A stretch of DNA of 18,574 bases. Origin: Oopsacas minuta. Taxonomy: Eukaryota > Animalia > Porifera. The stretch is from NCBI GenBank assembly GCA_024704765.1, contig JAKMXF010000302.1:539769-558342 (forward strand), in the 5' to 3' direction. Below, piece after piece: positions 985 to 18,574 of the stretch; position 1 is the stretch's first letter; every line of letters starts with the position of its first letter. The translations under genes were made by a program, and so were the position numbers. Under the pieces are notes generated by a model. The model was not told the DNA's origin, made no database searches, and saw only the letters and a program-made list of their open reading frames with translations.

Positions 985-1588
985 TTAAAAAATTATCAAA
1001 CAAAGGTGTCCTTTTGGCATTCTTTTCCTTCTTTTGATGCCTTCTTATCAGGCACCTTGTTGTTATGCTGTATTTGACCTACCAGTATTGTGGAACACTC
1101 TATCCACATTGAAATGAAACCAAGCTGATGTTTCTATGTATTCTCCCCACAGCATGGAGGCGATCGTCTCACCCTCGTTAGAGGAGATCCTCCTAGATTC
1201 GGACAGATCTATCTTGTTGCCTACAACCAAGAATGGGATCGATAGATTCACGTATCTCTTGATGTCTTTTTGTATTTCCTTGATTTCCTGGAGGCTGAAT
1301 CTATCTATGACAGAGAACACCAACAGATAGCCGTCACATTGATGGTAGAAGTCCTCCCGAATAATTCCACACTCATCAGTTCCTGCTGTATCCAGGATCT
1401 GTAAGATGTATAAACTGTCCTCCACTCTAGCCGGAGTCTCGTATACCTCCTCTATTGTAGGAATATATGCACACACGAATTCAGGAAAATGAGACATGTC
1501 TCACCAACAGCACCTACCTCGACACATTGTACATCTTCTGCTTCTCCTTGACTGATTTGTGCCCCTTCAGTGACTTCTCAGCTAGAAT
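985..1588 (-). pseudogene. Ras-family small GTPase pseudogene
   Basis: ORF 1063-1497 has G2 YIPTIEE, G3 DTAGT, G4 GNKID and G5 ETSAW. A degenerate P-loop (VGAVGETCLI) lies in another frame at about 1490-1525, preceded by KQKMYNVS in a third frame. The C-terminal helix LVGQIQH is frameshifted. A polybasic KRRKRMPKGHLCLIIF-stop (985-987) is followed by AATAAA (982-977). Confidence 0.8.
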
Positions 1589-2831: not shown

Positions 2832-3402
2832 ACAAAATTAATACAATTAAGTAAAGATTGCATATCGTATTACCTCGAATAATCCGCGGGGCGATTATTA
2901 ATTTCAAGCTTCAGAGGTTTAGATATTTGTGCACGATTATTCATATCATACCTATGTTTATGCAATATTATATTTATCCTTACAAACTTAGATTGACCAA
3001 ACTAAAGGGGAATGATTCACTGCATGGTTATATATTTTTAGGACCCACAGGGGGGGCGAATATTCAAGGTAATCGGGAATTTCATATCTACAGGACTATA
3101 GGGAAGACGAATTATTGTCGTTAACAACAATTTCAAGCAAAAATGTCGAGCCACAGACTGGTAGCAGCTCAGGGTCATGTACTTTTGTTCTTTCAAGGGC
3201 AAGTCCCCCTACCCAGAAAATGGCATGCTGGACCACTGATTATGGATCCGGATCAGATAAATATTTTTCAAATATTATAAATTAAATTTGAAAATATCAA
3301 AATTATAATTCACTTACATTACTCCTTAAGGAAGTTAAAATAAATTCTCTGTCATGATTTTAATATTAAGAAACAATACTAAACAATAAATTTTAAGAAA
3401 AG

Positions 3403-5483
3403 TCAGTTAAGATAAAGGATTGGAAGGGAAATTTTCTCTAAACTATTAGATCTATTTAGTTGAAAACTTTCGATGTCATCATCAGAATGAGTAGAGATGG
3501 CTTCTAACTGCACAGCTTTCTGCTTAGTCAAAAGTTCAAGAGGGAGTGAAATGTTGTTAAGCTGACCCAAAGTTCGCAAATCGAAATAATATTTAGCGTA
3601 TAGACTTAAAGGGACATTAACATCCAATTGTAATAGGTCAAAAAAATATCTTTCCATTTTATTGACATCATCAACTTGTAATTCTTCGAAAAGCTGACAA
3701 TAATCCACATTCCACACAGCTTTATCATTCCATACTTTCGAAGCTAACAAGATTGATCCAAACAATATTCGTTTCCAAGTAAAAACTGAAATATGAATCC
3801 CTGCGTATATAAGAAGGCGCTCCAAATAGATGAGAGAAATAATTGCACATTCTGGTGTCAACTCTGCTGGATAAAAAAGCTGTTTCATGAATCTATAAAT
3901 GGTCTTGGTTTCTGGAATAAGGCAGCTATCGAAACAAATTGCATTGTGACTTGAAATTGGGTGTAAACGCTCATCAAAAACATCCAAGTTACGAGGTTGT
4001 TGATTTCTAGAATCGAATATGAGTAAATTATGCACTGCTAACGCTACTGATTTTAGGGTATGCTTCATATTTGGTTGTGCAACTGTATTTGAATCGATAA
4101 AAACACTACTGGTGGAGGAGGACTTCCGAATTTCCTTGTGATTCCCAATTATGGCTAAGTGGTTGTTGTTCCAATAGAACGACCGGAGGAATAGAGTAGC
4201 AGTGACATCTTCAGGTTTAGTAATATTGGTTAGTGAAGGGTATATTGGAATTGTAGAAGAATCTGTATTCCCTATGTCAAAGTTTTGAAGAGGGGTCTGT
4301 TCAGGTGTCTATAGGCAAAATTAAATAAATCGACCCTTGCTAGCGTAGCAACTAGATGTGACATAGGAATTTGAAAATAGCTACATACGTAGTTAATACA
4401 ACAATTAACTTGAGTGAATGACTTATTAATTAATCACACATTCAATGATTAGATACAGCAAGCCTTAAGAATAATAATTCAATATTAATTAGTTACGAAG
4501 TAATTTCTGGTATTATGTAATGCGAGAAATATGGAAATTTAAAGAAAACAAATTACTACAAAACCATAACGTCAATTATAGGAATGAGTATTATATAACT
4601 CACATTGCGGATAGAACATACCAGGAAAGATTCATGAAATGTTTGGAAGAACAGTTGTTCTTCCAATGCCTCGTTTATGGCGTCCTCCAATACAGACATC
4701 AAATTACCTTATAAGGAAACAGAATAGACGTAATGATATTTACATTCTTGTAATTTGAAATCTTGGAAATTAGTGGGGTATTATGAACTATATTTTAAAA
4801 GTCGAGCACTATTCTCTATAGAACTTACAATTCGATCTTTCGTTACTTTCTACACTCTGCTGACGGACTTTACGTAAACTCTCTTCTAAATTAAAGGAGT
4901 TTCGAGATTTTTTTACATGCATATCAACTATATCGTCCTCAACTTCTGCAGGCCTAGATCGTTTGTGTGAAGAATTCGAGTTAATACTAGTTTGGAGTTC
5001 AATGGAACTCGTAACGATGATTTCAGAGTTTCTCAAGTCTTCTAGAGTCTGTTTTTCAGTAAATTTGAAATTATCACCAATTTTAACAACTGTAGGGCGT
5101 TGAGAATGACACATCCTATAATCCTATTTAAGATTAAAAATAGAAACATAATTCGTAGGGATGTATTAAATTGTCACCTCCAAATTGGGACGATTTAAGG
5201 GTGAATTATTGGAATTATCAACATTTGAATACAGTGGATTCCGGTTATAAGAACATGTATGCTACTCACAAGGGTGTTCTTATAACCAGCATCCATTAGG
5301 AACAATTATGCTACTTACTAGTAATGGCGAGTTAGTAGTTATCTTCTCTTGCGATTGTGAGTAGGGAGAGACACAGTGAGGTGAATCATTTGATGAATCA
5401 AATGGCTGGGGCTTAGGAGATGGTAAAGTCCCTGTTCGAGAATCAAAGGGTCCCCTAGATGCCAACTAGTAGATAGATATATA

Positions 5484-5528
<45 letters not shown>

Positions 5529-6161
5529 GTCTATCTATCTATGTTAGATAGGCTAGACCAGACTAGACTAGATTAGACTTACCGTCGCAGATTCAAATAA
5601 TTGTCCCAGTTCTAGGGTGCGGAAAGAAGAATCAGGAGAACGATCATCAGTATTTTCTAATAGCTAAACGAAATAACAACAACACATAATATCAAATATA
5701 AATATCAAACACATTAAGTGGACCCCCCATAACTGCAATACAAATTTTGAGACTCTATGGACCCGGTACTGTCGTCCGTAACCGTTCTATTATTGCATAA
5801 AGATATTACCTGTTCAGTCTGTGATGCTCCTCTTATATATTTTTTTAATGGCGATGTGTTCTTGGGGGTAACTGGATCAAGATGAGGGTATAACATGTTA
5901 GCTGTCTCTCCTGACTCAAGTTGGTTACTCTTTTGTGATCCTAAAACACAATTAAACCAATATTCCAATAGAGTATAATTAATAGTATGGAATTACCTGA
6001 GCAAGTTCCAGGATTGGGTTCAGCTCCTCTACTAAGTAAAAGATAAAACAGATGTTAAACACAGGACAAAGATTGTTAATATTTGAAAAAAGATAAATGG
6101 TAAAGGGAATAATATGAAATAAAAAATATCCGACAACTAACCTCTCTACATTTCCCTGTGC
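3403..6161 (-). CDS. CCNY: Cyclin Y-like protein, copy 1 (multi-exon, long N-terminal extension)
   Basis: The last exon (4308-3403) matches cyclin Y (RKSSSTSSVFID..VAQPNMKHTLKSVALA, LTPECAIISLIYLERLL, WKRILFGSILLASKVWNDKAVWNVDYC, YAKYYFDLR, C-terminal RSNS). Upstream AG/GT exons 6161-6142, 6031-5997, 5940-5810, 5663-5583, 5465-5319, 5123-4829 and 4707-4622 all join in phase, total 1701 nt and have no stop. Possible further exons at 6480-6478 (ATG) and 6432-6286 are less certain. Confidence 0.88.
5232..5298. mobile_element. Tiny pogo/Tigger-like TIR remnant (hairpin) in a cyclin intron
   Basis: TA|CAGTGGATTCCGGTTATAAGAACA ... TGTTCTTATAACCAGCATCCATTA. 24-bp inverted arms, 20/24 match, with a perfect 13-bp core around a 19-nt loop. 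Confidence 0.55.
5471..5542. repeat. (AGAT)2-(AT)n-(TCTA)n microsatellite, intronic
   Basis: About 14 TCTA units at 5486-5541, preceded by AGATAGAT. Confidence 0.95.
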
Positions 6162-7101
6162 CTGTGGAAAATACAAATATTCAATCATTGCAAATAAAAT
6201 ACGATAAAATTCACAGTTTAATATTAATTAATATGAAATTATACAATAGATTATACGACGGTTATATTACTACAACGTGACATACGTTATGTGTATAATA
6301 ACGTGACATACAAGTTGAAGAATTCGTATAATTGCAGATAATGAAAATGAGTAAAATTATGATTCTATCTGTTGTAAAGAAAATTGGACCGAGTTGAGGC
6401 AAATGTCTGCCTACACATTTTCCATATGCAATCTGAAACACGAATTGATAAACCATATTCAGTTAGGAGTTACTCACCATTTTATCAGGAATAATTTTCC
6501 TACTAGTAAGAAAAGTTATACACTTTCTAGCCAGTTTCAAGCAAATTCGAAATAGCACCGTACACGTCCAACGCATAACTTGAAACCCATAATAGATAAG
6601 CACCGACATTTTGAAAACACGATTAAAAGATAAACAAATAACAATTCTATTAAAAGATTATAACTATCATTAGCTTATACTATTAGTGTATTAGTAATTG
6701 TATTTGTGTTTGACAGATAATAATACAATAACTACACGCAAGTTCATTAGTAAAGGAAATAGGTTAATAGAAGTGTTACTATATTGAAAATATATCCAAT
6801 ATTGTATATTTGTTCATTCCTGAAGAAATACTATTAACTTCAAATCCGCAGAAAATAATTTAAATTACTTATTAGTATTTGTTGGGTTTGTTACCATATG
6901 TCTGATAATAATCTCATTAGTATGCTCTACTAGTGTAATAATTCGATCGTAATTAACCATTTTTGGAACGGTGCTAAGAATTATTGATAATCCCAAATCG
7001 GTTACAATTGCTTTCAAAGCGTATTTCCCAAAAATATGTCAAAAGTATTTGGGGAATTATAAATCAGTTAGCATGAGTATCCCTCCTGAATGCTTAGCAC
7101 A

Positions 7102-8032
7102 TATATTTGCTATACAAACTAAGTTCGTTTGTCTCATCATTATGGGTCAAATCATTCCATTGAATTTTGATGTATTCAAGCAAATGCTGAGCTCAGTGTT
7201 GTTGTAAATACAATTATAATAGCCACAAGGTTTACCTTAATACTTCCTAATGATATAGGGAAGTATAATGTGATTCTAGGGATATAAGTATATAATTATT
7301 CTAAAAAATAGATGTCAATTCGGGTCTTAGGGAGGAGTGAGGGGCGCTTTGGCACCTAACTTGGTACCAAGCCAGAGGAAACTCAAAACTTCATTGGCTT
7401 TATATGTATATAACATTCCAATTTTGATGTCCGAAATTGTATATCGCTGTTACTGACATTCATTTGTCCTCCCTTAGGGTGTTATGTATTAATAGGTAAT
7501 AATTGTCACCGATAAAGTGATGATAATAATGTCCAAAAGTTATTTACAGGCATAAGCGGCAATATTCTCAGAAATGTCTCACCTTTGGAACTGGGTTTCC
7601 TATCCGTCTCCCTTTCCTACAACAACACCATAGTAAAGCCAGGATGAAAGATAGAGCAACTATAATCGCTATTCCGATAGGTACTAATGAGTAGTAGTAG
7701 AGATGTGGATTTTCTAAAATGATAAACCAAATGAATAACGAGCCTTGCATTAGGTTACAGTGATATTCGCCTAATAGCAAGTTCATACATTAGTGAGGGA
7801 AATGTCCACATACGACTTGCTAATAGGTGAAGTCCACAGTATATAAGTTCCCTCTTCTAAACGGGAGAACAGTGGGGTTCGCTATTAGCAACTATCCTCT
7901 GCCTTCTGGAAACTTGCTAAATAATGGCGAACACTCCTGTAGATCAATACAACGAAGTTACTCATTGGAATGTGGGCGAATGCACGTGCGTCAATTGCAG
8001 ACTCACTTTTATAATCACAATCCTCCAGTATA
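7102..8032. repeat. Inverted segmental duplication, copy A (partner 17642-18574, runs off the window)
   Basis: Position x pairs with about 25676-x. ORF 7568-7786(-) equals 17890-18108(+) except H/Q. The copies are near-identical over 7102-7800 and differ more over 7800-8032. Confidence 0.95.
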
Positions 8033-8317
8033 CACCATCTGATAAAATCAAACTTGACAAATCTCACTCATTTCGTAATACACAATTGACTAATTCTGTA
8101 ATAGAATATTGAATTGTATACAAACTGAAATAACATACTATCCCCAATCAGAGATCACTTATATACCTATACAAGGCTAATGAGCTCTTTACTATTGAAC
8201 ATTTGGTCAATCATATATTATTAGCGATAATTAATGGAATTTTGGCCCAAAATACTAATTCCAATTAATTAATATTAGTATAAACTTACCAAAAGCATTC
8301 ATCTCTAAGTGTTGTCC
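7327..8317 (-). CDS. Single-pass type I membrane protein, 3' micro-exons (unknown family)
   Basis: Phase-consistent exons 8317-8290, 8038-8007, 7936-7903 (GC donor), 7713-7583 and 7446-7327 give ..GVYWRIVIIKECSPLFSKFPEENPHLYYYSLVPIGIAIIVALSFILALLWCCCRKGRRIGNPVPKRYTISDIKIGMLYTYKANEVL..PP-stop: a TM helix, juxtamembrane CCC and a basic stop-transfer. The 5' end was not resolved. Confidence 0.6.
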
Positions 8318-8677
8318 CTGAGACGTAAATGACGATTAGTAAACATGTGTAATAACACTTTGCCTTTGAGGAACTTCTATATCTACTTTACTCTGTATTT
8401 CATCTTCAGTATATTTGGATTCTGATGAAAATGATAAGTATTGTCCGAATGTTAGTTGTTCCAATGCTTCTATTCCTTCCATTTACTTATCTAATAAATA
8501 TAATTACTTTAAGTTATTCTATGAATTAATTCAGTTTGTACAATTGAGCTATAAACTACTCATAATTTTCCACATTTGATCCTATTTTATGCTAAATGTT
8601 ATTCCTGTCCACATCATATTGGTGTAACTTCCCTATGCATATATCAAGTGTCCATATAGTTTTACTTTACAAGAAAT

Positions 8678-9814
8678 TCACATGAACCTATCTTTACAAT
8701 CACTATGTAATTGGTTGAAGGAGCCTCTATTTATTATATATCATTCGGATGCTAAGATATTCAAAATTGGGATTGAACCACAGCTTGTATTCCTTCAAGC
8801 AATTGTCATTCTGGTATACAATTTAATTTAACGGAGTTAACATTTTCTCAGAGATGAACCAAGATTTCTCATAAATAATTAGAATAATTCCGAGTTCAAC
8901 AACTTTACATAAATATGCTAAGGTTGAATATTATGAATAACTTACCCATGTTCATCTCTCTCCATCAAATGGTATCTACCTCTGAAAGCAACTAAATGCG
9001 CGTAATAAGCATGAGCTGGAATAGATACAGATCTGGTACACACTACATATGTATGACATAATTGGTAAGTAAGAGATTGTAGCTCATCAGCTGTAAAGTT
9101 GTTCTCATCCCATAATACGTGGTAATGAGATGGATGAGATGTTCCCTATAAGAACAATATTAAATTGAATTATCATTTGAATATAAATTGATCGAAGGTC
9201 CAATTGAAACAGTAGGACAGCGGTCCCCAACATTTTCGCCCGTGGACCCATATACCATTTTAACACATGCTGTGGACCTCTTCACATAAACTTTTGACAT
9301 CCTGTGGACCCCCTGCTGTCATCTGTGGACCACCAAATGATCCATGGACCCGCTGCATTAGGAATCTTTTACCTATTAAAATCAATAAGATCGCTAAATT
9401 ATAATCCAATCATATAACTTAATACAAAACTTATATACGTATTCCAATATTTATGTAAAATAGTTCTAAAAATAAGAACTTACAAATATTTACATATAAC
9501 GCTAGTGTATCCATAAATGAAGCAAATTATAATCTACAAATTACAACTACAGATGCCATAAATAATTAATATGACTTTCCTGTACACATACCTGAATACC
9601 TGAATGACGACAGATAGAAATCAAATTCTGTTGGATGAGTAATACCTACATCTACTGTAGTACCAGCTGGGATGTTGCCAGATTTACCACATTGATCTTT
9701 CTTCTCTGAACAGAACAGACGAGTCTGGACGATAACGAATGTAATTCCAGGCTTGTAGTCAGCTTCTAGTTTACTACAAGCTTCTCTTACTGCTCTCAAT
9801 TCTTGACTCAATGC
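8678..9814 (-). pseudogene. AGO: Argonaute (AGO clade) C-terminal PIWI fragment, disrupted
   Basis: Exon 9814-9592 reads [50 protein letters not shown]. Exon 9145-8946 reads [55 protein letters not shown]. The KRHH motif is deleted (12 nt) and a 2-nt frameshift precedes GIQ|gt. A possible last exon at 8726-8678 (GSFNQLHSDCKDRFM-stop) is low confidence. No N/PAZ/MID exons occur in the window. Confidence 0.92.
9218..9355. mobile_element. hAT-family MITE (138 bp) in the Argonaute intron
   Basis: Ends CAGCGGTCC... / ...GGACCCGCTG. TSD CAGTAGGA (9210-9217) vs CATTAGGA (9356-9363), 7/8. Five internal (G)TGGACC motifs. Confidence 0.75.
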
Positions 9815-9967
9815 CTGTGACGTAAATAGACTCATTACATTATAACTATCATACTTTCAACCCTCTCAGAATCTTGCAATTTACAAGAAATTAGGGAAAT
9901 ATTTGCAATTTTCTTACCTGATTCCCCAAATAATCGCCCAAAAATGCGATAACAACAAAGCATAATT

Positions 9968-10002
9968 CACAGTGGTTTGAATGCAAAGAATAGACAAAAA
10001 TA
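9968..10002 (+). other. Putative left TIR, RSS-like: heptamer CACAGTG, 19-nt spacer, ACAAAAATA
   Basis: Perfect RSS heptamer at 9968-9974 and a 7/9 match to the nonamer ACAAAAACC at 9994-10002. Transib TIRs are known to begin CAC-A-(A/G)-TG. Confidence 0.6.
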
Positions 10003-10648
10003 GATTTCATTTTTAATGGTTTAAACTCGTTCTTGTTTGTTTGAATAATGTTAATTTCAAATTTCAATTCGATCGAATCATATAGCTCTCACAATATGAA
10101 TTTAAAGAATCAATCAAAAATAGTTCTATTTGCGGTTTCAGTGATGCTAATATTAGCACCAATTTAAGTTTACTTGAGAGCGTCACAGAATTCTCCGAAT
10201 CAAATTTATTTTATTTCCTCAACACAATTCAGTTATGCTAAATCTGATTTCTCATTTTCGTCAGTGTATCTTTACTAATTTGGATTCAAAGTTGATTTGA
10301 TTAATGGTACTTTAGAGGTACAATATTTTAAAAAAAAGAACTTCCAAATGGCCGCAAAAAAAACACACCACAAAACACCACAAAACACCACTTAGAAATT
10401 AATTCCAAAATGGCATTATAATATCTAGAAAGACATATTAAAATGATAAGCCCCGAAACAGTGCGCAACATGAAAAATTTCAGCGAATTCCATTGTCACC
10501 TTTTTGTTGCTATGCAATTTATATGCTAAATTTATCTACTCGATTGCAGCATTCCAATTACCAATAAATGTAATATATAAATACATGATTAATATGACAT
10601 TAACAAATTGAATTTGCTGATAATCAACCGTTTTCTACGCTTTTACCA

Positions 10649-12200
10649 ATGACTCAAGAACTAACTATCCCTAACTCTCATCTTGAATTTGCGAAGATTT
10701 TGAAAGACAACAACAACTGTATCTCGACGACACTCAGTTTCTTTGACCAGAACTTTCAAATGGACTTCGAAGAAAGGAAACAATTGGAAGCAACGCTCCT
10801 CCGAGTAAGAAGCAGGATCAGGAAGGCAAAGAAATCGCTAGATTGCTTAGAGGGAGACTGGTGGCATTGTGGTATATCCATGGAACCAGAGTTGAAGAGG
10901 AACCGTTTTTATGATACCGTTGAGCTGTCTTCAGATGATGAAGAAGTCATATCCACACTCTCTGCAAACCATAGGAAGAGTATTGACAATCTCACGATGC
11001 AACAACAACGCTCACGACTCTCAAATGTCTTGGAATCTATCAAAGCACTCTCAATCGTTGAGAATACTTCAGAAATCAAGATAGCTGCACTTGCCTTGCA
11101 ACTACTATCGAACCAAACAAAACAGCGAGAAATAGCTAAAGTTTCAAAATCTGTAGTCTATGACAAGTTTTCGGGTCAATTCGGTAAAATGTTGAAGAAA
11201 GAGCTCGATGTTACCAAGACAGTGTTCCTTGTAGATCTCCTAGAAATTGGCAGGAGGAAATACACACAACTCCGACATCACTTGCTATCTAGCGATATTC
11301 GTTTCCCGGCATACTATAGGGTAGTAGAAGAAAGAAACAGTATAATTTTACGGTCGGATATTCAGATGTACCCCAATCCTGAAACTCCACTTGGTGTATA
11401 TATGCCATATGCCCATCACGTCTGCCATACTTTTTGCAGGCTTATGTCCACGCTACCGCCACCTCCAGCTTAAGATTATCCCCTACAATTCCAGATAGCA
11501 GAAGGACTAGATGGCTCTGGAAGTCACACTGTATATAATCAATCAAACACGAATACAGATACTAAGTCGTTTATCTTATTCTGTTTCAGAGCTGTAAAGG
11601 TAATAAGCAATAGCGGTCGCGAACTCTGGAAAAATAACACTCCCAATTCTCCTTTTGCTCAACGTCCGATTTCCTCCTCGCTGCGAAAGAAAACGAAGCT
11701 AATATCAAGCGATTTATGGACGATCTAATCAATACTGATACTGATCTTATGAGAAGTGAAGGATTTACTCTTGGCCCTGATCAGCAAGTACGAGTCGACA
11801 TTGTTCGATCAATGCTTGATGGGAAAATGGCAGGAATTCTATCTGGGGCAGGTGGGGCAAGTTGTCAATTATGTACAGCAACACATAAGGAACTCAGTGA
11901 TCGTGAGTTGATAATACAGGGATTTCCTATCAACAGGTACATTACTGATGCAATTCAACTTTTCGGTGAAATAGAAGACAGCCATTCGTTCTTCTCACTT
12001 CCTTCAAACCAACGTTGTAACATAACGCACGAACCAACCTCAACAATAAACATCCTTCCAGCATCTCCGTTACACTCGTACACTGGCATTTTCAGGTGGT
12101 TCAATCTACTAATTTATCATTTGAATTGTGGAAAACGTACATGGTCACCGACATCTTTGGCGATAAAAATTCGATGATATTTGTCAGAAATCTGATTGAA
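10649..12200 (+). pseudogene. Transib/RAG1-family DDE transposase, disrupted
   Basis: ORF 10649-11473 has LT..QQ.SRL helices and a DDBD-like LDVTKTVFL..KYTQLR..FPAY. Reading through the TAA (11471-11473) gives IAEGLDGSGSHTVYNQ (first Asp, 11510-11512) and LWKNNTPNSPFAQRPI. A 1-nt deletion near 11670 restores RPIFLLAAKENE into ORF 11716-12177 with SMLDGK (second Asp, 11818-11820), SCQLC and SPLHSY. Another probable shift lies near 12168. The catalytic Glu would lie beyond the N. Confidence 0.9.
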
Positions 12201-12201
12201 N
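12201..12201. other. Single-N scaffold join
   Basis: N at 12201, where the transposase stops abruptly. Confidence 0.95.
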
Positions 12202-12962
12202 TTGTGACGCAATCATAGTACGTATACGAAAGTTTACTTGAGATATACACTTTTATCACTATCAACTTATAACTTTCCGCAAGTTCTGATCACCGAATTT
12301 ACCATTACAAAAGTATTTTCATACTAATATTCACAAAATTAATACAATTAAGTAAAGATTGCATATCGTATTACCTCGAATAATCCGCGGGGCGATTATT
12401 AATTTCAAGCTTCAGAGGTTTAGATATTTGTGCACGATTATTCATATCATACCTATGTTTATGCAATATTATATTTATCCTTACAAACTTAGATTGACCA
12501 AACTAAAGGGGAATGATTCACTGCATGGTTATATATTTTTAGGACCCACAGGGGGGGCGAATATTCAAGGTAATCGGGAATTTCATATCTACAGGACTAT
12601 AGGGAAGACGAATTATTGTCGTTAACAACAATTTCAAGCAAAAATGTCGAGCCACAGACTGGTAGCAGCTCAGGGTCATGTACTTTTGTTCTTTCAAGGG
12701 CAAGTCCCCCTACCCAGAAAATGGCATGCTGGACCACTGATTATGGATCCGGATCAGATAAATATTTTTCAAATATTATAAATTAAATTTGAAAATATCA
12801 AAATTATAATTCACTTACATTACTCCTTAAGGAAGTTAAAATAAATTCTCTGTCATGATTTTAATATTAAGAATTAATATATGTGAAAACATTATATTTT
12901 AATGAATCATTGTTAACTATAGCCAATGAGGAAATTAGCAATTTAATATAACCTGAGACACA

Positions 12963-15226
12963 TCAGTTCAGTACAACATAAGATTTGGAAGGAAAAATTT
13001 GTTCTACACTATTAGACCGTGTATTTGGTTGAAAATTTTCGATATCAGAATCACAGTGTGTAGACATTGCTTCCAAATGCACAGCTTTCTGCTTAGTCAA
13101 AAGTTCAAGAGGGAGTGAAATGTTGTTAAGCTGACCCAAAGTTCGCAAATCGAAATAATATTTAGCGTATAGACTTAAAGGGACATTAACATCCAATTGT
13201 AATAGGTCTAAAAAATATCTTTCCATTTCATTGACATCATCAACTTGTAATTCTTCGAAAAGGTGACAATAATCCACATTCCACACAGCTTTATCATTCC
13301 ATACTTTCGAAGCTAACAAGATAGATCCAAACAATATTCGTTTCCAAGTAAAAACTGAAATATGAATCCCTGCGTATATAAGAAGGCGCTCCAAATAGAT
13401 AAGAGAAATAATTGCACATTCTGGTGTCAACTCTGCTGGATAAAAAAGCTGTTTCATGAATCTATAAATGGTCTTGGTTTCTGGAATAAGGCAGCTATCG
13501 AAACAAATTGCATTGTGACTTGAAATTGGGTGTAAACGCTCATCAAAAACATCCAAGTTACGAGGTTGTTGGTTTTTAGAATCGAATATGAGTAAATTAT
13601 GCACTGCTAACGCTACTGATTTTAGGGTATGCTTCATATTTGGTTGTGCAACTGTACTTGAATCGATAAAAACACTACTGGTTGACGAGGACTTCCGAAT
13701 TCCATTGTGATTCAAAGTTATGGGAAAGTGGTTGTTTTTGTTTTTGTTGTAATAGAAACAGTATAGGAACAACACAACGTGATCTGGTGGTGAAGGCCAT
13801 ATTGGTAGAGGGGTCTGTTCAGGTGTCTATAGGCAAAATTAAATAAATCGACCCTTGCTAGCGTAGCAACTAGATGTGACATAGGAATTTGAAAATAGCT
13901 ACATACGTAGTTAATACAACAATTAACTTGAGTGAATGACTTATTAATTAATCACACATTCAATGATTAGATACAGCAAGCCTTAAGAATAATAATTCAA
14001 TATTAATTAGTTACGAAGTAATTTCTGGTATTATGTAATGCGAGAAATATGGAAATTTAAAGAAAACAAATTACTACAAAACAATAACGTCAATTATAGA
14101 AATGAGTATTATATAACTCACATTGCGGATAGAACTTACCAGGAAAGATTGATGAAAAGTTTGGAAGAACAGTTGTTCTTCCAGGGACTCATAAATGGCC
14201 TCCTCAAAAACTGACATCAAATCACCTTATAAGGAAACAGAATAGACGCAATGATATTTACATTCTTGTAATTTGAAATCTTGGAAATTAGTGGGGTATT
14301 ATGAATTATATTTTAAAAGTCGAGCACTATTCTCTATAGAACTTACAATTCGATCTTTCGTTACTTTCTACACTCAAGGAGTTTCGAGATTTTTTTACAT
14401 CCATATCAACTATATCGTCCTCAACTTCTGCTGGCCTAGATCGTTTGCGTGAAGAATTCGAGTTAATGCCTTTTTCAATCGAATTCGTAACGATAATTTC
14501 AGAATTTCTTAGGTCTTCTAGAGTCTGTTTTTCAATAAATTTGAAACTATCACCACTTTTAAGAAGTGTAGGAATTTGGGAAGGACACAGACTGTAATCC
14601 TATTTAAGATTAAAAATAGAAACATAATTCGTAGGGATGTATTAAATTGTCACCTCCAAATTGGGACGATTTAAGGGTGAATTATTGGAATTATCAACAT
14701 TTGAATACAGTGGATTCCGGTTATAAGAACATGTATGCTACTCACAAGGGTGTTCTTATAACCAGCATCCATTAGGAACAATCATTTGTTGAATCAAATG
14801 GCTGGGGCTTAGGAAATGGTAAAGTACATGTGCGAGGAATGTGAATGAATGGGTAGAGATTATTCTTTATTATTTCTCCTGTAGTATTTCGGCTGGGAAA
14901 TCCCTAAATTGTATGTTTGTAAGCGAACTGAATAAATCCAATCACTACGGAGATTCATATACATTTTCAGTGAAGATAACTTAATCTCTCAAGTAATATA
15001 ATTCTATAAATACTTACCAATTGTCCTGACTCTAATTGGAAATTTGGAGGAGCGAGTGGTGTTATGGGTCCTCTAGATGCCGACTAGTAGATAGATAGAG
15101 AGATAGATAGATAGGCTAGACCAGACTAGACTAGATTAGACTTACCGTCGCAGATTCAAATAATTGTCCCGGTTCTTGGGTGGGGAAAGAAGAATTAGGA
15201 GAACATTCATCAGTATTGTCTAATAG
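12963..15226 (-). CDS. CCNY: Cyclin Y-like protein, copy 2 (5' part disrupted and truncated)
   Basis: Exons 13826-12963 (intact cyclin box), 14225-14140 and 14599-14347 are in phase. Upstream are 15226-15146, 15083-15018 and an exon from 14903 that hits TAA at 14774-14772 because its donor was deleted. The gene is cut by the N at 15227. Confidence 0.82.
14708..14774. mobile_element. Second copy of the pogo/Tigger-like hairpin remnant
   Basis: Identical to 5232-5298. Confidence 0.55.
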
Positions 15227-15227
15227 N
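15227..15227. other. Single-N scaffold join
   Basis: N at 15227, exactly at the acceptor boundary of a cyclin exon. Confidence 0.95.
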
Positions 15228-15396
15228 CCTTTCTTAACTTACTTATTGTTTCATATAATTCTGTATTGATAGAAAGCATCTGTTCCAACTTAGTACTGCA
15301 CTCACTCAACTATAAATAGGAAAGTATGAGATCGAACTCAGTCAAAATGTATTATTAATTGAAATAAATACACATTTCTCATTTAGTGAACAGATT

Positions 15397-15741
15397 TCAA
15401 TTTACCTCCTGATTATCTTTGAGTACTTCCCTCTCTCTTCCAGCTGTTTTCAACTCCTCTATCTCCTCAGTATCTCCTTCTACCTGTAAGACCAATTGCT
15501 GGGAACGTAGTCTTGAAACCTCTTTATCCTCCCCAACAGATGATAGCTGTATATCTTGCTTAGTCCTGCTCTCTTTCTCATCAGTATACTCTATACGTAG
15601 AAGTGATAGAGACTTGCTCAGAGCCTCAATTTCATCTGATGTATTAGGTAGAACTTCTTCGAATTCTTTAACTTTATATTCCTTAAACTGATCTAGATTC
15701 TCCTCACATTCTTTCAGAGATTCCTCCAATTTATAAATCAC
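15397..15741 (-). CDS. Glu/Lys/Leu-rich coiled-coil exon, probably downstream of the PCM1-like exon
   Basis: 114-codon ORF with heptad-like composition (LEESLKECEENLDQFKE.., IEALSKSLSLLRIE), ending at a GAG|GTAAAT donor-like site. No clear acceptor. Confidence 0.5.
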   Translation of the reverse strand: MIYKLEESLKECEENLDQFKEYKVKEFEEVLPNTSDEIEALSKSLSLLRIEYTDEKESRTKQDIQLSSVGEDKEVSRLRSQQLVLQVEGDTEEIEELKTAGREREVLKDNQEVN

Positions 15742-15796
15742 AAATATTCATAATAACATTAACAAGTTATTTACCTATCTAGTTATATGTGAGAGG

Positions 15797-16912
15797 TTAT
15801 TCGAGGGGGAATACCTCTGAGATGTCACTCTCATCTTCATCACAAACACCTATTTGTATTGCTTCAAAGTCATCAGGTTTGTCAACGAGTGAGTGGATAG
15901 AGTCTAATGCTTCAGACACCTGATAAGCTCGAGAGACACTTCGCTCATCAACCTTCTCACTTGATCCGGACAGGTTACTGTTCAGGTAGTAGTGTCTGAG
16001 GGGAACATTCTGGCTGGGAGAGTACACGCTCTCTTGTCTCCTCGCCACCTGCAATCTCTCTGACACTTGTGTACAAGGTATGAAAGAAAAAGGGGCGGGG
16101 GGAGGTTGTGGAATAGCAGAGAAGGCTTCAGCATCGATCAGATCACAATTTTCATCATCATTACTCACACGCTTCAGACAACTCAGACCACATTCTCTCA
16201 CATAATCACTATTGAGTAATTGAGCTACACGAATAAGCTCCAGCATGTAGTAGGGACATGTTTCATTCTGTCTTACCAGAGAGGCTACCCCTGAATATAT
16301 CCGTTCCATCACTTCGTCGAATACAGGAGAATCAACACCTGGGGAAACCCTCTTCTGTGAATTGTGACGAGTAACATGACCAGATTTCCTTCTGGGGGAA
16401 GCAGGAACAGCATTCACTTGTTGTTGTGGTTGTTTTCTGTAACAGTGCATAGGAGTGACTTCCCGTCTAGGAAGATTATCACGAGCTAAGGGCACGCGGT
16501 GTTGAGATGATATCATATTATCAGAGAAAGTTAGATCAGTTTGAGTACAGCTAGTAGTTACAGGCACACGTGGCTCATGTATCCACTGGTTAACCGGGTG
16601 TAAAGCAGGATCAGGACCAGGACCAGGACCAGGACCAGGACCAGGAGTAGGTAAGCTCTGGTACATATTAGCATCAACTGAAGAGGGATAGAAGCCAGGA
16701 GTAGGTGTAGGGTAGCTGAGAAGGACAGGAGGAGCTGTCTGGTAGTAAGGAGGGACTGGAAGGGAATAAGGAGCACTAGGGAAAGTAGTACCGTGAGGAG
16801 TAGTACAGTAGTGTATAGCAGGATAGTATGTAGGATAACAGCTACACTGTTGATATAAGGCAGTAGTGGGTACAGGGATGTGAGGCTGTTGTATAGACAG
16901 AAATTGTGTCAT
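15797..16912 (-). CDS. PCM1: PCM1-like (pericentriolar material 1) large exon
   Basis: VFDEVMERIYSGVASLVRQNETCPYYMLELIRVAQLLNSDYVRECGLSCL aligns with the recalled PCM1 C-terminal domain start IYSEVATLISQNESRPHFLIELFHELQLLNTDYLRQRAL. Acceptor cag|ATG at 16913/16912; probable donor GAG|GTATTC at 15815/15814. Confidence 0.7.
   Translation of the reverse strand: MTQFLSIQQPHIPVPTTALYQQCSCYPTYYPAIHYCTTPHGTTFPSAPYSLPVPPYYQTAPPVLLSYPTPTPGFYPSSVDANMYQSLPTPGPGPGPGPGPDPALHPVNQWIHEPRVPVTTSCTQTDLTFSDNMISSQHRVPLARDNLPRREVTPMHCYRKQPQQQVNAVPASPRRKSGHVTRHNSQKRVSPGVDSPVFDEVMERIYSGVASLVRQNETCPYYMLELIRVAQLLNSDYVRECGLSCLKRVSNDDENCDLIDAEAFSAIPQPPPAPFSFIPCTQVSERLQVARRQESVYSPSQNVPLRHYYLNSNLSGSSEKVDERSVSRAYQVSEALDSIHSLVDKPDDFEAIQIGVCDEDESDISEVFPLE
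16606..16647. repeat. Coding hexamer repeat (CAGGAC)x7, giving PGPGPGPGPDP
   Basis: caggat-caggac x5-caggag. Confidence 0.95.
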
Positions 16913-17574
16913 CTGTTCGGCTAAAATACACAGGAGTCAAATGTGTGGAAATATACACATTGGAAAACTTGTAAATGTGCACAACTAGAGGTCACTACAA
17001 GTACACATGCCAAATTTGGTGTCTTAACTTAGAAAGGTGTGAACAGTAGAGCGCAAACATATACGTATATATTATATATACTCAACCATTTTACAACTGA
17101 GCCACTATACTATGCAATAGTATTAATCGGAATAGCAAAAATAGAATATACAATTACATACTCAGAGTGCATTACTTAGATTTACAGCAGCTTGGTATTT
17201 GTTTCGCTTAGCAAACAAAAGTAACATTGCAATGCCATATAAGTAAAATTGATCATTCGGGTTTCTTACTGAGTACTTGAATAGATACGAGTCTTGAATA
17301 GAGATATCTATTTGCTACAACGGAATTATCATCTATAGTTTCTACGATACACTGGTACTCTCATGTGTCTAACTCCTGGGTGTCTCTGAAGAGTAAAGTT
17401 CCTTGGTGGGGAGATACGTAACTCACTCTGTTGCTAGTCTGATGAGGAATATACGTATATATATATTTTTAGCGGGGATAAGGCATTATATTTAGCTGCA
17501 AAAGGATTCCATCTACTAGCCACTTAAACGATAGAGAGAGTTCCACATCTACACTAGCCTGATATACAAGATAG

Positions 17575-18349
17575 TTATCTTGGGCTAGTGCAAAAGACAT
17601 CAAAATTGGAATATTATATACGCATAAGGCCAATGAAGTTTTATACTGGAGGATTGTGATTATAAAAGTGAGTCTGCAATTGACGCACGTGCACATTCGC
17701 CCACATTTCAATGAGTAACTTCGTTGTATTGATCTACAGGAGTGTTCGCCATTATTTAGCAAGTTTCCAGGAGGTAAAGGATAGTAACTAATAGCGAACT
17801 CTCCTGTTCTCCCGTTTAGAAGGGGAAGCTTATGTACTGTGGACTTCACCTATTAGCAAGTCGTATGTGGACATTTCCCTCACTAATGTATGAACTTGCT
17901 ATTAGGCGAATACCAATGTAACCTAATGCAAGGCTCGTTATTCATTTGGTTTATCATTTTAGAAAATCCACATCTCTACTACTACTCATTAGTACCTATC
18001 GGAATAGCGATTATAGTTGCTCTATCTTTCATCCTGGCTTTACTATGGTGTTGTTGTAGGAAAGGGAGACGGATAGGAAACCCAGTTCCAAAGGTGAGAC
18101 ATTTCTGAGAATATTGCCGCTTATGCCTGTAAATAACTTTTGGACATTATTATCATCACTTTATCGGTGACAATTATTACCTATTAATACATAACACCCT
18201 AAGGGAGGACAAATGAATGTCAGTAACAGCGATATACAATTTCGGACATCAAAATTGGAATGTTATATACATATAAAGCCAATGAAGTTTTGAGTTTCCT
18301 CTGGCTTGGTACCAAGTTAGGTGCCAAAGCGCCCCTCACTCCTCCCTAA
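17575..18349 (+). CDS. Membrane-protein gene, inverted copy with a chimeric 5' exon
   Basis: Exons 17575-17667 (LSWASAKDIKIGILYTHKANEVL-YWRIVIIK), 17740-17773 (GT donor), 17963-18093 (TM) and 18230-18349 are phase-consistent. The first exon model is uncertain. Confidence 0.45.
17596..18291. repeat. 47-bp direct repeat (17596-17642 and 18245-18291)
   Basis: GACATCAAAATTGGAATrTTATATAC..AArGCCAATGAAGTTTT, 4 mismatches. Confidence 0.9.
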
Positions 18350-18574
18350 GACCCGAATTGACATCTATTTTTTAGAATAATTATATACTTATATCCCTAG
18401 AATCACATTATACTTCCCTATATCATTAGGAAGTATTAAGGTAAACCTTGTGGCTATTATAATTGTATTTACAACAACACTGAGCTCAGCATTTGCTTGA
18501 ATACATCAAAATTCAATGGAATGATTTGACCCATAATGATGAGACAAACGAACTTAGTTTGTATAGCAAATATA
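17642..18574. repeat. Inverted segmental duplication, copy B (partner 7102-8032)
   Basis: Reverse complement of 7102-8032, continuing to the window end. Confidence 0.95.

Follow-up and report, generated by a model that had tools for sequence, protein, structure and literature searches.

Exons more diverged than introns in a young cyclin-Y-like multigene family of the glass sponge Oopsacas minuta

At MHC-type loci, old exon lineages are carried on homogenised introns. In snake venom three-finger toxin genes, a recently duplicated multigene family, accelerated evolution is combined with exon-segment exchange (ASSET): members have closely similar intron segments but clearly distinct exon segments, variants appear to have been exchanged, and dN exceeds the intron rate (PMC2474615). 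An excess of exon over intron divergence, a pattern described elsewhere for venom and immune genes, is reported here at 5-17x between close copies in a cyclin-Y-like family of the sponge Oopsacas minuta. The window is the whole stretch of DNA that was analysed, 18,574 nucleotides of contig JAKMXF010000302.1; its features are collected in Table 1.

Table 1. Features of the window, with differences over aligned positions between copies A and B (A-B) and in other comparisons
Feature	Position	Strand	A-B	Details
Copy A, annotated 'Cyclin-Y-like' gene KAI6651805.1 (P0134)	3403-8302	-		614 aa; gene call mapped to window
Copy A CDS exons	8290-8302, 7583-7716, 6143-6161, 5998-6035, 5810-5940, 5583-5663, 5319-5465, 4829-5123, 4622-4707, 3403-4308	-
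Membrane-anchor exon of A	7583-7716	-		ENPHLYYYSLVPIGIAIIVALSFILALLWCCCRKGRRIGNPVPK
Copy B, partial (3025 nt, ~3 kb)	12202-15226	-		single N on each side, 12201 and 15227
Copy B exons	15146-15226, 14347-14599, 14140-14225, 12963-13826	-
Member E (inverted first-exon copy)	17642-18574	+		inverted copy, 98%, of 7102-8032; carries membrane-anchor exon
3' flank	2832-3372		0/541 (B 12333-12873, 100% identical)	9.8% from D2, 10% from F
Hypervariable C-terminal tail and proximal 3' UTR	3373-3510	-		three-way alignment
Cyclin box	3511-4130	-	10/620 (1.6%)	Pfam Cyclin_N and Cyclin; from canonical cyclin Y last exon; A-D2 11/620; A-canonical C 43/620
Hypervariable 5' part of last exon	4131-4308	-	178 nt in A, 127 nt in B, net 51 nt
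Intron	4309-4621	-	3/313	3-4 differences per 313 nt among A, B, D2; ~10% from F, G
Exon	4622-4707	-	13/86	Sd 7, Nd 5 over 26 whole codons
Intron	4708-4828	-	2/121	7-9% from D1, G, F
Exon	4829-5123	-	26/253	in-frame gaps of 36 nt and 6 nt
Intron	5124-5318	-	0/183 (5124-5306)	0-4 differences in 183-197 nt in five copies on three scaffolds
Exon	5583-5663	-	7/81	every change alters the amino acid

The exons of copy A were placed by exact mapping of the P0134 peptide with GT/AG flanks (window position = 11528 minus L002 position). Copy A starts directly beside a 186-N scaffold gap (2646-2831), and copy B has no upstream exons, its piece stopping exactly at an acceptor site. Both copies retain an open four-exon reading frame with GT/AG at the exon borders, and every exon indel keeps the frame. 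The counterpart of A exon 5319-5465 is disrupted in B, where 77 nt are deleted and 225 nt inserted, and its donor site is gone. B-specific stretches were found again in per-run contigs (Logan contigs, one sample), none of which bridged the N at 12201 or at 15227 or skipped B; the summed depths of these contigs are not copy numbers for A or B. The placement of B near A is unproven, and B may be allelic or its contig misplaced.

The original prediction took A and B for two cyclin Y copies; they are instead units of a young, recently expanded multigene family restricted to O. minuta. The members P0134, P0135, and P0283-P0287 all come from O. minuta and have a common N-terminal module, and at least five further units exist besides A and B: D1, D2, F, G, and the inverted first-exon copy E, which reads rightwards out of the window. 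Members combine a transmembrane anchor with a long, probably disordered Ser/Pro-rich module of many short exons and a C-terminal domain from another gene. In A and B the C-terminal part is a cyclin-Y-derived last exon with its 3' UTR, and in other members the N-terminal module is joined instead to an OTULIN-like or TRAF-like domain. The hydrophobic stretch encoded by the anchor exon of A is about 23 residues long and precedes a Cys cluster and basic residues; a transmembrane topology is predicted from these features, and the protein would tether a cyclin-Y-type CDK partner at the membrane. A Ras ORF in the window is 100% identical to P0121, and L002 is the window in reverse orientation, which marks the window as O. 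minuta sequence.

The canonical cyclin Y (CCNY) of O. minuta, denoted C, is KAI6661734.1 (P0001) on another scaffold, JAKMXF010000008.1 (L001). The best matches of A and B are cyclin Y proteins (Pfam Cyclin_N E = 3e-09 and 1e-10, respectively), and their last exon matches that of the canonical gene in box, tail, and proximal 3' UTR with 91-93.5% nucleotide identity; no similarity was found between the window and the canonical locus outside the last exon, and the two are not syntenic. An R-S-x-S motif, read from the sequences, is kept in the tail of all copies. Unlike the canonical gene, a single locus elsewhere, the family is multi-copy, and the transmembrane exon, together with a new module exceeding 300 amino acids, stands in place of the MGNC lipid-anchor start. 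The N-terminus of P0134 is MNAFENPHLYYY followed by a hydrophobic helix, without a Met-Gly lipid-anchor start, while other glass-sponge cyclin Y proteins (P0002 and P0004) begin with MGNC, and in the P0001 model an added N-terminal extension precedes the same MGNCLRPYVSLEDR stretch, which begins at residue 14. The N-terminus of B is absent from its piece. A and B were considered as CCNY orthologues and rejected as such: they have the cyclin-box fold but neither the lipid-anchor start nor the single orthologous locus. The cyclin box of A compared with that of C gives a dS of 0.08 and an omega of 0.95 (0.8-0.95 for the box across copies). Distance from the canonical gene is 7-8% in the box and 16-18% in the 5' part of the last exon of A, B, and D2; in the tail it is 15.8% for A and D2, 13.6% for F, and 3.2% for B. 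Since the box flanks are 14-18% from the canonical sequence and the box only 7-8%, the acceleration came after capture.

Global alignment of A (2832-5663) with B (12333-15226) reproduced every exon, intron, and cyclin-box count of the original prediction. Exons differ at 106/1185 positions and introns and other non-exon sequence at 14/1188 (p = 0.008, from circular-shift permutation of the exon annotation, carried out per pair). When dN/dS was computed per exon and divergence per intron, dS was 0.25-0.78 in the diverged exons and intron or flank divergence 0.004-0.012 (5/1196 to 14/1188), so the predicted lag of introns behind exon synonymous sites is borne out. The exon segments have a far deeper history than the introns, and the difference is not due to chance. 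The 5' part of the last exon, where many small indels remain even in a gap-tolerant alignment, has an omega of about 1.1; exons 2 and 3, with omega only 0.35 and 0.12, do not demonstrate positive selection. The C-terminal tail is canonical in B but frameshifted and diverged in A. The identity counted at 5124-5306 in the original prediction is correct; the adjoining 5307-5544 is rearranged, not identical, and holds the annotated A exon 5319-5465.

Because B is a short piece, the A-B contrast might be allelic. B would then represent a further haplotype of A, or of a different member, maybe from another individual or a brooded embryo, inserted nearby by the scaffolder, and the contrast would be exon hypervariability of alleles on a common intron background, as in the balanced-allele idea. 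In keeping with this, the 3025-nt piece sits between two single-N joins with no contig bridging either N, A begins at the 186-N gap, and B lacks upstream exons and covers exactly the stretch from the gap to exon 5583-5663, including 541 nt of identical flank; B is bounded by scaffold joins and lacks unique flanks. The source tissue broods embryos, and Illumina and PacBio DNA were separate extractions. However, the assembly authors anticipated low heterozygosity, the structure of B departs from that of A by the 77-nt and 225-nt indels, and B exon 1 with its adjacent intron is 98.8% identical to D2 on another scaffold. The same contrast is also found at clearly non-allelic loci (A-D1, A-F, and D1-G1), and the haplotype reading is unlikely.

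The pattern is family-wide and gene-wide rather than peculiar to A and B, with an exon excess in several independent pairs. Exons and introns differ at 49/407 (12.0%) and 51/2344 (2.2%) positions in A-D1 (circular-shift p 0.004), at 64/322 (19.9%) and 64/1593 (4.0%) in A-F (p 0.0009), and at 30/274 (10.9%) and 2/315 (0.6%) in D1-G1 (p 0.03). Over five pairs the exon/non-exon ratio is 5-17 in close pairs and 2-3 in the deepest comparisons. A-D2 is an exception, with a ratio of 1.4 when the box is included (p = 0.25), and the close pair A-E runs in the opposite direction, its exon being identical (0/134) and all 15 differences intronic. In the upstream exons, dN, dS, and intron divergence (Ki) are 0.152, 0.095, and 0.022 for A-D1 (Fisher 3e-16 for nonsynonymous against intron sites) and 0.242, 0.180, and 0.040 for A-F. 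Upstream dN is thus about 6-7x the intron rate, dS is also raised about 4-fold, and omega is 1.3-1.6.

The assembly was made with SPAdes, SSPACE, Pilon, and GapFiller, and intron identity could have been created or exaggerated if near-identical repeat edges collapsed in the SPAdes graph, if variant exons were threaded wrongly through intron edges common to several copies, or if polishing drew on multi-mapped reads, RNA-seq reads perhaps among them. 'All Illumina reads' were used, the libraries being RNA-seq, DNA paired-end, and mate-pair, and reads were selected on corrected PacBio reads before SPAdes (k 21-99), SSPACE, Pilon, and GapFiller. No single-base A-B difference is more than 99 nt from the nearest other one, and the long identical stretches contain none, which is what popping of isolated differences in the assembly graph would leave behind. 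The end of the B contig coincides exactly with a splice acceptor, an effect that spliced reads in the graph would have. An artefact of this kind is nevertheless very improbable. Introns of 121-197 nt are shorter than 2k, so a private difference would be k-mer-linked to a copy-specific exon and not popped; 150-nt RNA reads should not map end to end within exons of 81-134 nt; and the substitution spectrum is broad, without an editing-like A-to-G excess. The long intron 6162-7582 keeps 22 A-D1 differences, being 7x less diverged than the neighbouring exons, and the excess is found again, without B, on the gap-free contigs L003 and L005. The locus resembles haplotigs or a repeat collapse in that B is short, lies between scaffold joins near a near-identical region, and has long 100% stretches, but the differences are concentrated in open-frame exons and the contrast recurs across separate large scaffolds.

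The four-gamete test fails for 38 of the 78 pairs formed by the 13 informative sites of exon 2, which fall into 6 partitions. Five states of B exon 2 are in common with F, yet the flanking introns are A-like. Exon segments have probably been exchanged among members, with parallel substitution as an alternative source of the same sites. Differences had been said to begin within a few bases of the splice sites: the outermost are indeed close and always on the exon side, but lie 2-29 nt inside (5118, 4858, 4705, 4633, 4288, and 5608). Past the stop codon, the diverged C-terminal block takes in about 30 nt of the 3' UTR plus a 59-nt indel. Spliced transcripts or cDNAs from other members might have served as templates for conversion or repair of genomic copies, overwriting exon interiors and the 3' UTR and sparing introns and sequence beyond the poly(A) site. 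All well-defined A-B diverged blocks, including the 30 nt of 3' UTR, are transcribed exon, identity returns shortly before the first ATTAAA signal, and margins of 2-29 nt are unaltered at exon edges; exon 2 of B has F-like states between A-like introns, and dS is raised as much as dN, the outcome expected of whole segments derived from older paralogues. Such RNA-templated exchange is nonetheless improbable. Conversion from a cDNA template normally deletes introns, as known from yeast work, whereas all introns are retained here; the likeness of B to D2 includes an intron, the cyclin box is exonic too but only 1.6% diverged, and no exon-matching donor or intronless copy was found among the loci compared.

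The explanation judged best, at about an even chance, is that introns, box, and flanks owe their likeness to recent duplication or gene conversion, whereas the coding module evolves quickly and trades short segments. The family would have spread by recent DNA-level duplication, with members still exchanging sequence by gene conversion, and the neutral or conserved introns, cyclin box, and flanks would thereby stay 0-4% apart within a subfamily. The N-terminal module and the box-side coding segments would change several times faster than introns by substitutions and in-frame indels, and swapping of short exon segments would make each exon a mosaic. Where a segment is dense in mismatches and indels, homogenising conversion may be blocked or selected against, and boundaries between alike and unlike sequence would for this reason sit at exon edges. 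The original suggestion of a disordered region escaping homogenisation agrees with these data, which fit a fast-evolving, probably disordered region; a germline or gamete role is speculative. Selection for protein change may drive the exon excess, and gene conversion, beyond recent duplication alone, probably keeps the introns alike. Family introns fall into two classes, 0-2% or 8-10% apart, which fits a recent homogenisation layer better than constraint. Intron 5124-5318 has a hairpin at 5243-5287 (15-bp stem, fold z-score -4.2) present only in family introns among the loci compared, and intron 4309-4621 has no significant RNA structure (fold z -0.2). A point against duplication and conversion with fast coding change is that the diverged exons have a dS greatly exceeding the intron rate; protein selection alone is therefore insufficient, and old lineages kept apart, distant donors, or exon-aimed mutation are needed. 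Homogenised tracts of 150-330 nt that end 2-29 nt from six splice sites are also awkward for ordinary gene conversion.

The family shares with MHC-type loci an exon dS far above intron divergence, identity tracts that stop near exon edges, and exons that are mosaics of common variants. The picture for an MHC-type excess of dN over dS is mixed, with omega 1.3-1.6 in the upstream exons, 0.12-0.35 in A-B exons 2 and 3, and about 1.1 in A-B at the 5' side of the last exon. Unlike MHC, the contrast is between paralogous loci on different scaffolds, not alleles, and at least ten exons are affected instead of one. With the ASSET toxin genes the family has in common recent duplicates, similar introns, unlike exons, apparently swapped exon variants, and dN above Ki. 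Secreted toxin products were considered for this family and rejected, as members have a membrane anchor with cyclin, OTULIN-like, or TRAF-like domains. While the toxins are secreted, the O. minuta products are predicted to be intracellular, membrane-anchored, and of a signalling type; their variable parts are a probably disordered linker and the flanks of the cyclin box, and omega above 1 is confined to the upstream exons.

Copies A (2832-5663) and B (12333-15226, partial) form a direct repeat in the self-comparison of the window, and global alignment reproduced every A-B count of the original prediction (see table). In both copies the four-exon frame is uninterrupted and the splice sites are canonical. 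In a gap-tolerant alignment the diverged blocks show 8 to 14% substitutions and many small indels. The differences nearest the exon edges are 2 to 29 nt inside the exons, and circular shifts of the exon annotation gave p = 0.008 for the exon excess. The C-terminal diverged block extends into the 3' UTR. The exon-over-intron observation is real, and is stronger than originally reported. The original picture of the region needs correction at 5319-5465, which the annotated model of A treats as an exon; in its B counterpart a 77-nt deletion takes out the donor and a 225-nt insertion is also disruptive.

The excess is family-wide and does not require B. The units aligned were A and B, the partial tandem units D1 and D2 (locus L003), F (L004), G (L005), and E, an inverted first-exon copy in the window. 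Intron 5124-5318 has 0 to 4 differences among five copies on three scaffolds, and the exon next after it differs by 8 to 22% in all pairs, from its fourth base on. Intron 4309-4621 differs by about 1% among A, B, and D2, but F and G are about 10% away; for intron 4708-4828 the divergence is 1.7% between A and B and 7 to 9% from D1, G, and F, with 0/120 differences between D1 and G1. Across five pairs, circular-shift p values for the exon excess were 0.0009 to 0.03, except for A-D2 with the box (p = 0.25). For the upstream exons, Fisher tests against intron sites gave 3e-16 (A-D1) and 9e-17 (A-F) for nonsynonymous sites, and 0.001 and 8e-5, respectively, for synonymous sites. A counter-example is provided by the inverted repeat (7102-8032 versus 17642-18574, 98% in self-comparison): between A and E the anchor exon has 0/134 differences, and all 15 differences are intronic. 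A (GATA)n microsatellite in an intron of A (5480-5544) is missing from B, D1, and D2.

Positions, differences, and rates of the features compared (window coordinates unless a locus is named; Ki, intron value)
Feature	Position	Comparison	Differences	Rates	Remark
3' flank	2832-3372	A-B	0/541
Cyclin box	3511-4130	A-B	10/620
Tail		A-B		dS 0.78, omega 0.29	codon counts inflated because A's tail is partly frameshifted
Last exon, 5' part		A-B	178 nt in A vs 127 nt in B	dS 0.27, omega 1.1
Intron	4309-4621	A-B	3/313
Exon 3	4622-4707	A-B	13/86	dS 0.68, omega 0.12
Intron	4708-4828	A-B	2/121
Exon 2	4829-5123	A-B	26/253 + gaps of 36 and 6 nt	dS 0.25, omega 0.35
Intron	5124-5306	A-B	0/183
Exon 1	5583-5663	A-B	7/81		every one amino-acid changing
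Upstream exons		A-D1	49/407 (12.0%)	dN 0.152, dS 0.095, Ki 0.022	each exon 10 to 15%; contigs without Ns
Upstream introns		A-D1	51/2344 (2.2%)		1.4-kb intron 1.6%; contigs without Ns
Upstream exons		A-F	64/322 (19.9%)	dN 0.242, dS 0.180, Ki 0.040	contigs without Ns
Upstream introns		A-F	64/1593 (4.0%)		contigs without Ns
Intron hairpin	5243-5287, 14719-14763; L003 13172-13216, 15225-15269; L005 4430-4474
P0134	3403-8302				614 aa; annotated copy A
P0135	scaffold JAKMXF010000363.1				835 aa; cyclin-Y-like

The genes were originally described as two cyclin Y copies, but the canonical cyclin Y gene (C) lies on another scaffold and matches the window only in the last exon and proximal 3' UTR (93.5% to B, 90.9% to A). 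Its product, O. minuta 'Cyclin-Y' (P0001, 394 aa), is the best database match of the last exon and has the MGNC start of other cyclin Y proteins. An exhaustive profile search found two cyclin-Y-like O. minuta proteins, P0134 and P0135, and a further one with the same N-terminal module, P0285, lies 11 kb right of the window. P0134 opens with a hydrophobic helix and the sequence CCCRKGRR; a stretch of over 300 residues, enriched in Ser, Pro, Asn, and Gln, separates these from the cyclin-Y-derived part. As the sole query, the N-terminal module matched O. minuta proteins only, including a 1075-aa Peptidase_C101 (OTULIN-like) protein, a TRAF-like protein, and a C2H2 protein. Since the first coding exon of the anchor sits in the inverted repeat, the further member E starts at about 17962 (+), and it reads on out of the window. 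Exact gene records were sought for P0283, P0284, and P0287 and none was found. The object is a new, species-restricted gene family and not a duplicate pair of cyclin Y. Two points call for caution with the annotation: family genes are labelled 'Cyclin-Y-like', and the P0135 model (L003 10001-16737), in which the peptide SQTE.LLDNTDECSPNSSFPTQE.GQLFESATSASRGPITQLAPPNFQLESGQ is present twice, appears to merge two partial tandem units. Judged from sequence, a transmembrane anchor would replace the lipid anchor of cyclin Y, and the family product might by this means tether a CDK partner of the cyclin-Y type to a membrane. That other members have the cassette joined to OTULIN-like and TRAF-like domains, taken with the rate pattern, points toward a putative function in conflict or recognition biology.

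The box differs from the canonical gene by 6.6 to 8.2% (dS 0.08 to 0.11, omega 0.8 to 0.95), and the cyclin-Y-derived stretches flanking it by 14 to 18% in A, D2, and F; the tail of B stays canonical, at 3.2% from C. The capture of the cyclin-Y exon sets an upper limit on the age of these flanks, so they must have evolved faster in place, by about twofold. Close pairs show a far stronger contrast, of 5- to 17-fold, so a second process is needed as well, either recent homogenisation or duplication of the rest. Counted by eye, the box (L001 10001-11407 versus 3511-4130) has 33 to 38 nonsynonymous and 10 to 13 synonymous differences from the canonical gene, which agrees with other glass sponges; the predominance of amino-acid changes, with C like its relatives, suggests a burst of protein change in the family box after capture. 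Among A, B, and D2 the box omega is 0.26 to 0.60. Conversion of the B tail from the canonical gene was also considered and set aside, because the B-C differences (4/125 in the tail, 41/620 in the box) look too few to distinguish it from a retained ancestral tail.

Exon 2 is mosaic. Its 13 informative sites support six different bipartitions, all four gametic combinations occur at 38 of 78 site pairs (four-gamete test), and five states are common to B and the distant F, with the flanking introns of B being A-like; exon 1 of B with its adjacent intron is 98.8% identical to D2. RNA-templated exchange among family members remains a rival explanation for such a pattern. Substitutions are of many kinds, in exons as in introns (exon transitions 44 to 57%), which speaks against RNA editing and adenine-specific (DGR-like) mutagenesis; both were rejected. 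Structured or known RNA as the cause of the invariant introns was likewise rejected: Rfam gave no match at its gathering threshold or at E <= 1, shuffled versions of intron 4309-4621 fold as well as the intron itself, and the one strong hairpin, in 5124-5318, cannot account for 100% identity across 183 to 197 nt. A perfect 13-nt inverted repeat (GGTTATAAGAACA ... TGTTCTTATAACC) gives rise to that hairpin of at least 15 bp (z = -4.2), which could represent a dispersed palindromic element of small size or else a hairpin RNA. A high-copy repeat may still be a cause of intron identity: although the motif occurs in family introns only among the roughly 90 kb of loci examined, 24 to 25 contigs in two runs have the hairpin with other flanks.

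Assembly effects remain another rival for the exon-intron contrast. The window lies in assembly GCA_024704765.1 (scaffold JAKMXF010000302.1) of the glass sponge Oopsacas minuta: the product of a Ras-like ORF at 1066-1497(-) has 100% identity to a protein of this species whose locus is the window in reverse, base for base. Runs of N occur at 2646-2831 (186 N), 12201, and 15227, so that A starts directly after a scaffold gap; B lies within a 3025-nt piece flanked by two single-N joins, has none of the upstream exons, and stops precisely on the acceptor of exon 15146-15226. The assembly was made with SPAdes (careful, k 21-99) from Illumina reads chosen by mapping to Canu-corrected PacBio reads, followed by SSPACE, Pilon, and GapFiller (PMC10280926). 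The Illumina libraries include RNA-seq, DNA paired-end, and mate-pair, and the methods state that 'all Illumina reads' were used (PMC10280926). The end of the B contig at 15226/15227 is the first exon base, as would happen had spliced RNA-seq reads introduced a branch into the assembly graph. A gene that contains a PCM1_C-like segment (ORF 15797-16912; window 15228-17597(-)), duplicated at 96% on L003 (18080-20659), follows the cyclin-like gene at locus D and precedes B in the window, and the 186-N gap is at the equivalent position at locus A; given these differing positions, scaffold order in the window may be wrong. Between A and B lie a Piwi-domain fragment (9566-9835(-); annotated as a 157-aa gene) and two transposase ORFs (10649-12177(+)), originally described as RAG1/Transib-like; the N at 12201 falls 24 nt past the stop of the second and may be a repeat-edge join. 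In L002, the locus of the window in reverse orientation, 21360-22016 and 17573-17691 are 92 to 94% direct duplicates of short pieces of the window (15228-15596 and 17477-17596), situated 6 to 10 kb to its left. The whole neighbourhood is pieced together from segmental copies.

Allelic hypervariability, with B being a haplotype, also remains a rival; the sequenced material was embryo-brooding adults (PMC10280926). Four runs of one sample, the only ones with the stretch, were examined as short Logan contigs and were aligned to 11700-16500 at 85% likeness with 15084-15226 skipped as repeat. The B-specific stretch 14421-14624 recurs exactly, with 0 differences (contig X3 record 23), and 13630-13839 recurs with 1 difference (contig X4 record 29). 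At many exon sites only a small part of the depth carries the letter of B; the depth sums thousands of paralogous pieces and is thus not a copy number, but the low share suggests that the alternative letters are carried by other family members. At intron sites 14280 and 14283 other letters make up 50 to 84% of depth, so introns of other members do differ. None of the run contigs bridges the N at 12201 or 15227. These runs are probably the source data of the assembly, and hence not independent evidence.

The best-supported mechanism is accelerated, mosaic exon evolution over a conserved intron scaffold. A young family would spread and homogenise at the DNA level, while the coding sequence of the membrane-anchored module and the box flanks would diverge fast and swap short segments; segments dense in mismatches and indels would drop out of homogenisation, or homogenised variants would be selected against. 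The original suggestion of paralogues with a disordered region resistant to gene conversion comes close to this account. The account does not fully explain raised dS and the sharpness of the six splice-site boundaries, and RNA-templated exchange, allelic hypervariability, and assembly effects stay rivals for this reason. It is considered quite improbable that heritable sequence exchange in the family is limited to exons through templating by the spliced RNA or cDNA of paralogues, or that the family is subject to a mutational process aimed at exons. If true, either would be a natural diversity generator by which a membrane-anchored signalling family has its coding sequence rewritten but its introns spared, in an animal that lacks a segregated germline.

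If the pattern of accelerated, mosaic exons holds in a clean long-read assembly, then this lineage-specific family, in which the membrane anchor is combined with either a cyclin-Y box or a domain of OTULIN-like or TRAF-like type, has protein evolution several times faster than neutral sequence. Protein change above the neutral rate is the usual mark of genes for conflict and recognition, such as those of immunity, self/non-self, and symbiont control. The innate immunity of this animal group is poorly known. Key metazoan core genes are missing in the group, according to the title of the genome paper (PMC10280926). With at least ten short exons in several copies, the family would also be a compact natural system for asking why alike and unlike tracts end at splice sites, with counter-selection of conversion, barriers set by mismatches, and RNA-templated exchange as candidate causes. 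Exchange of exon segments has been described in snake three-finger toxin genes (PMC2474615), and it is close to the two-layer account proposed here for the O. minuta family.
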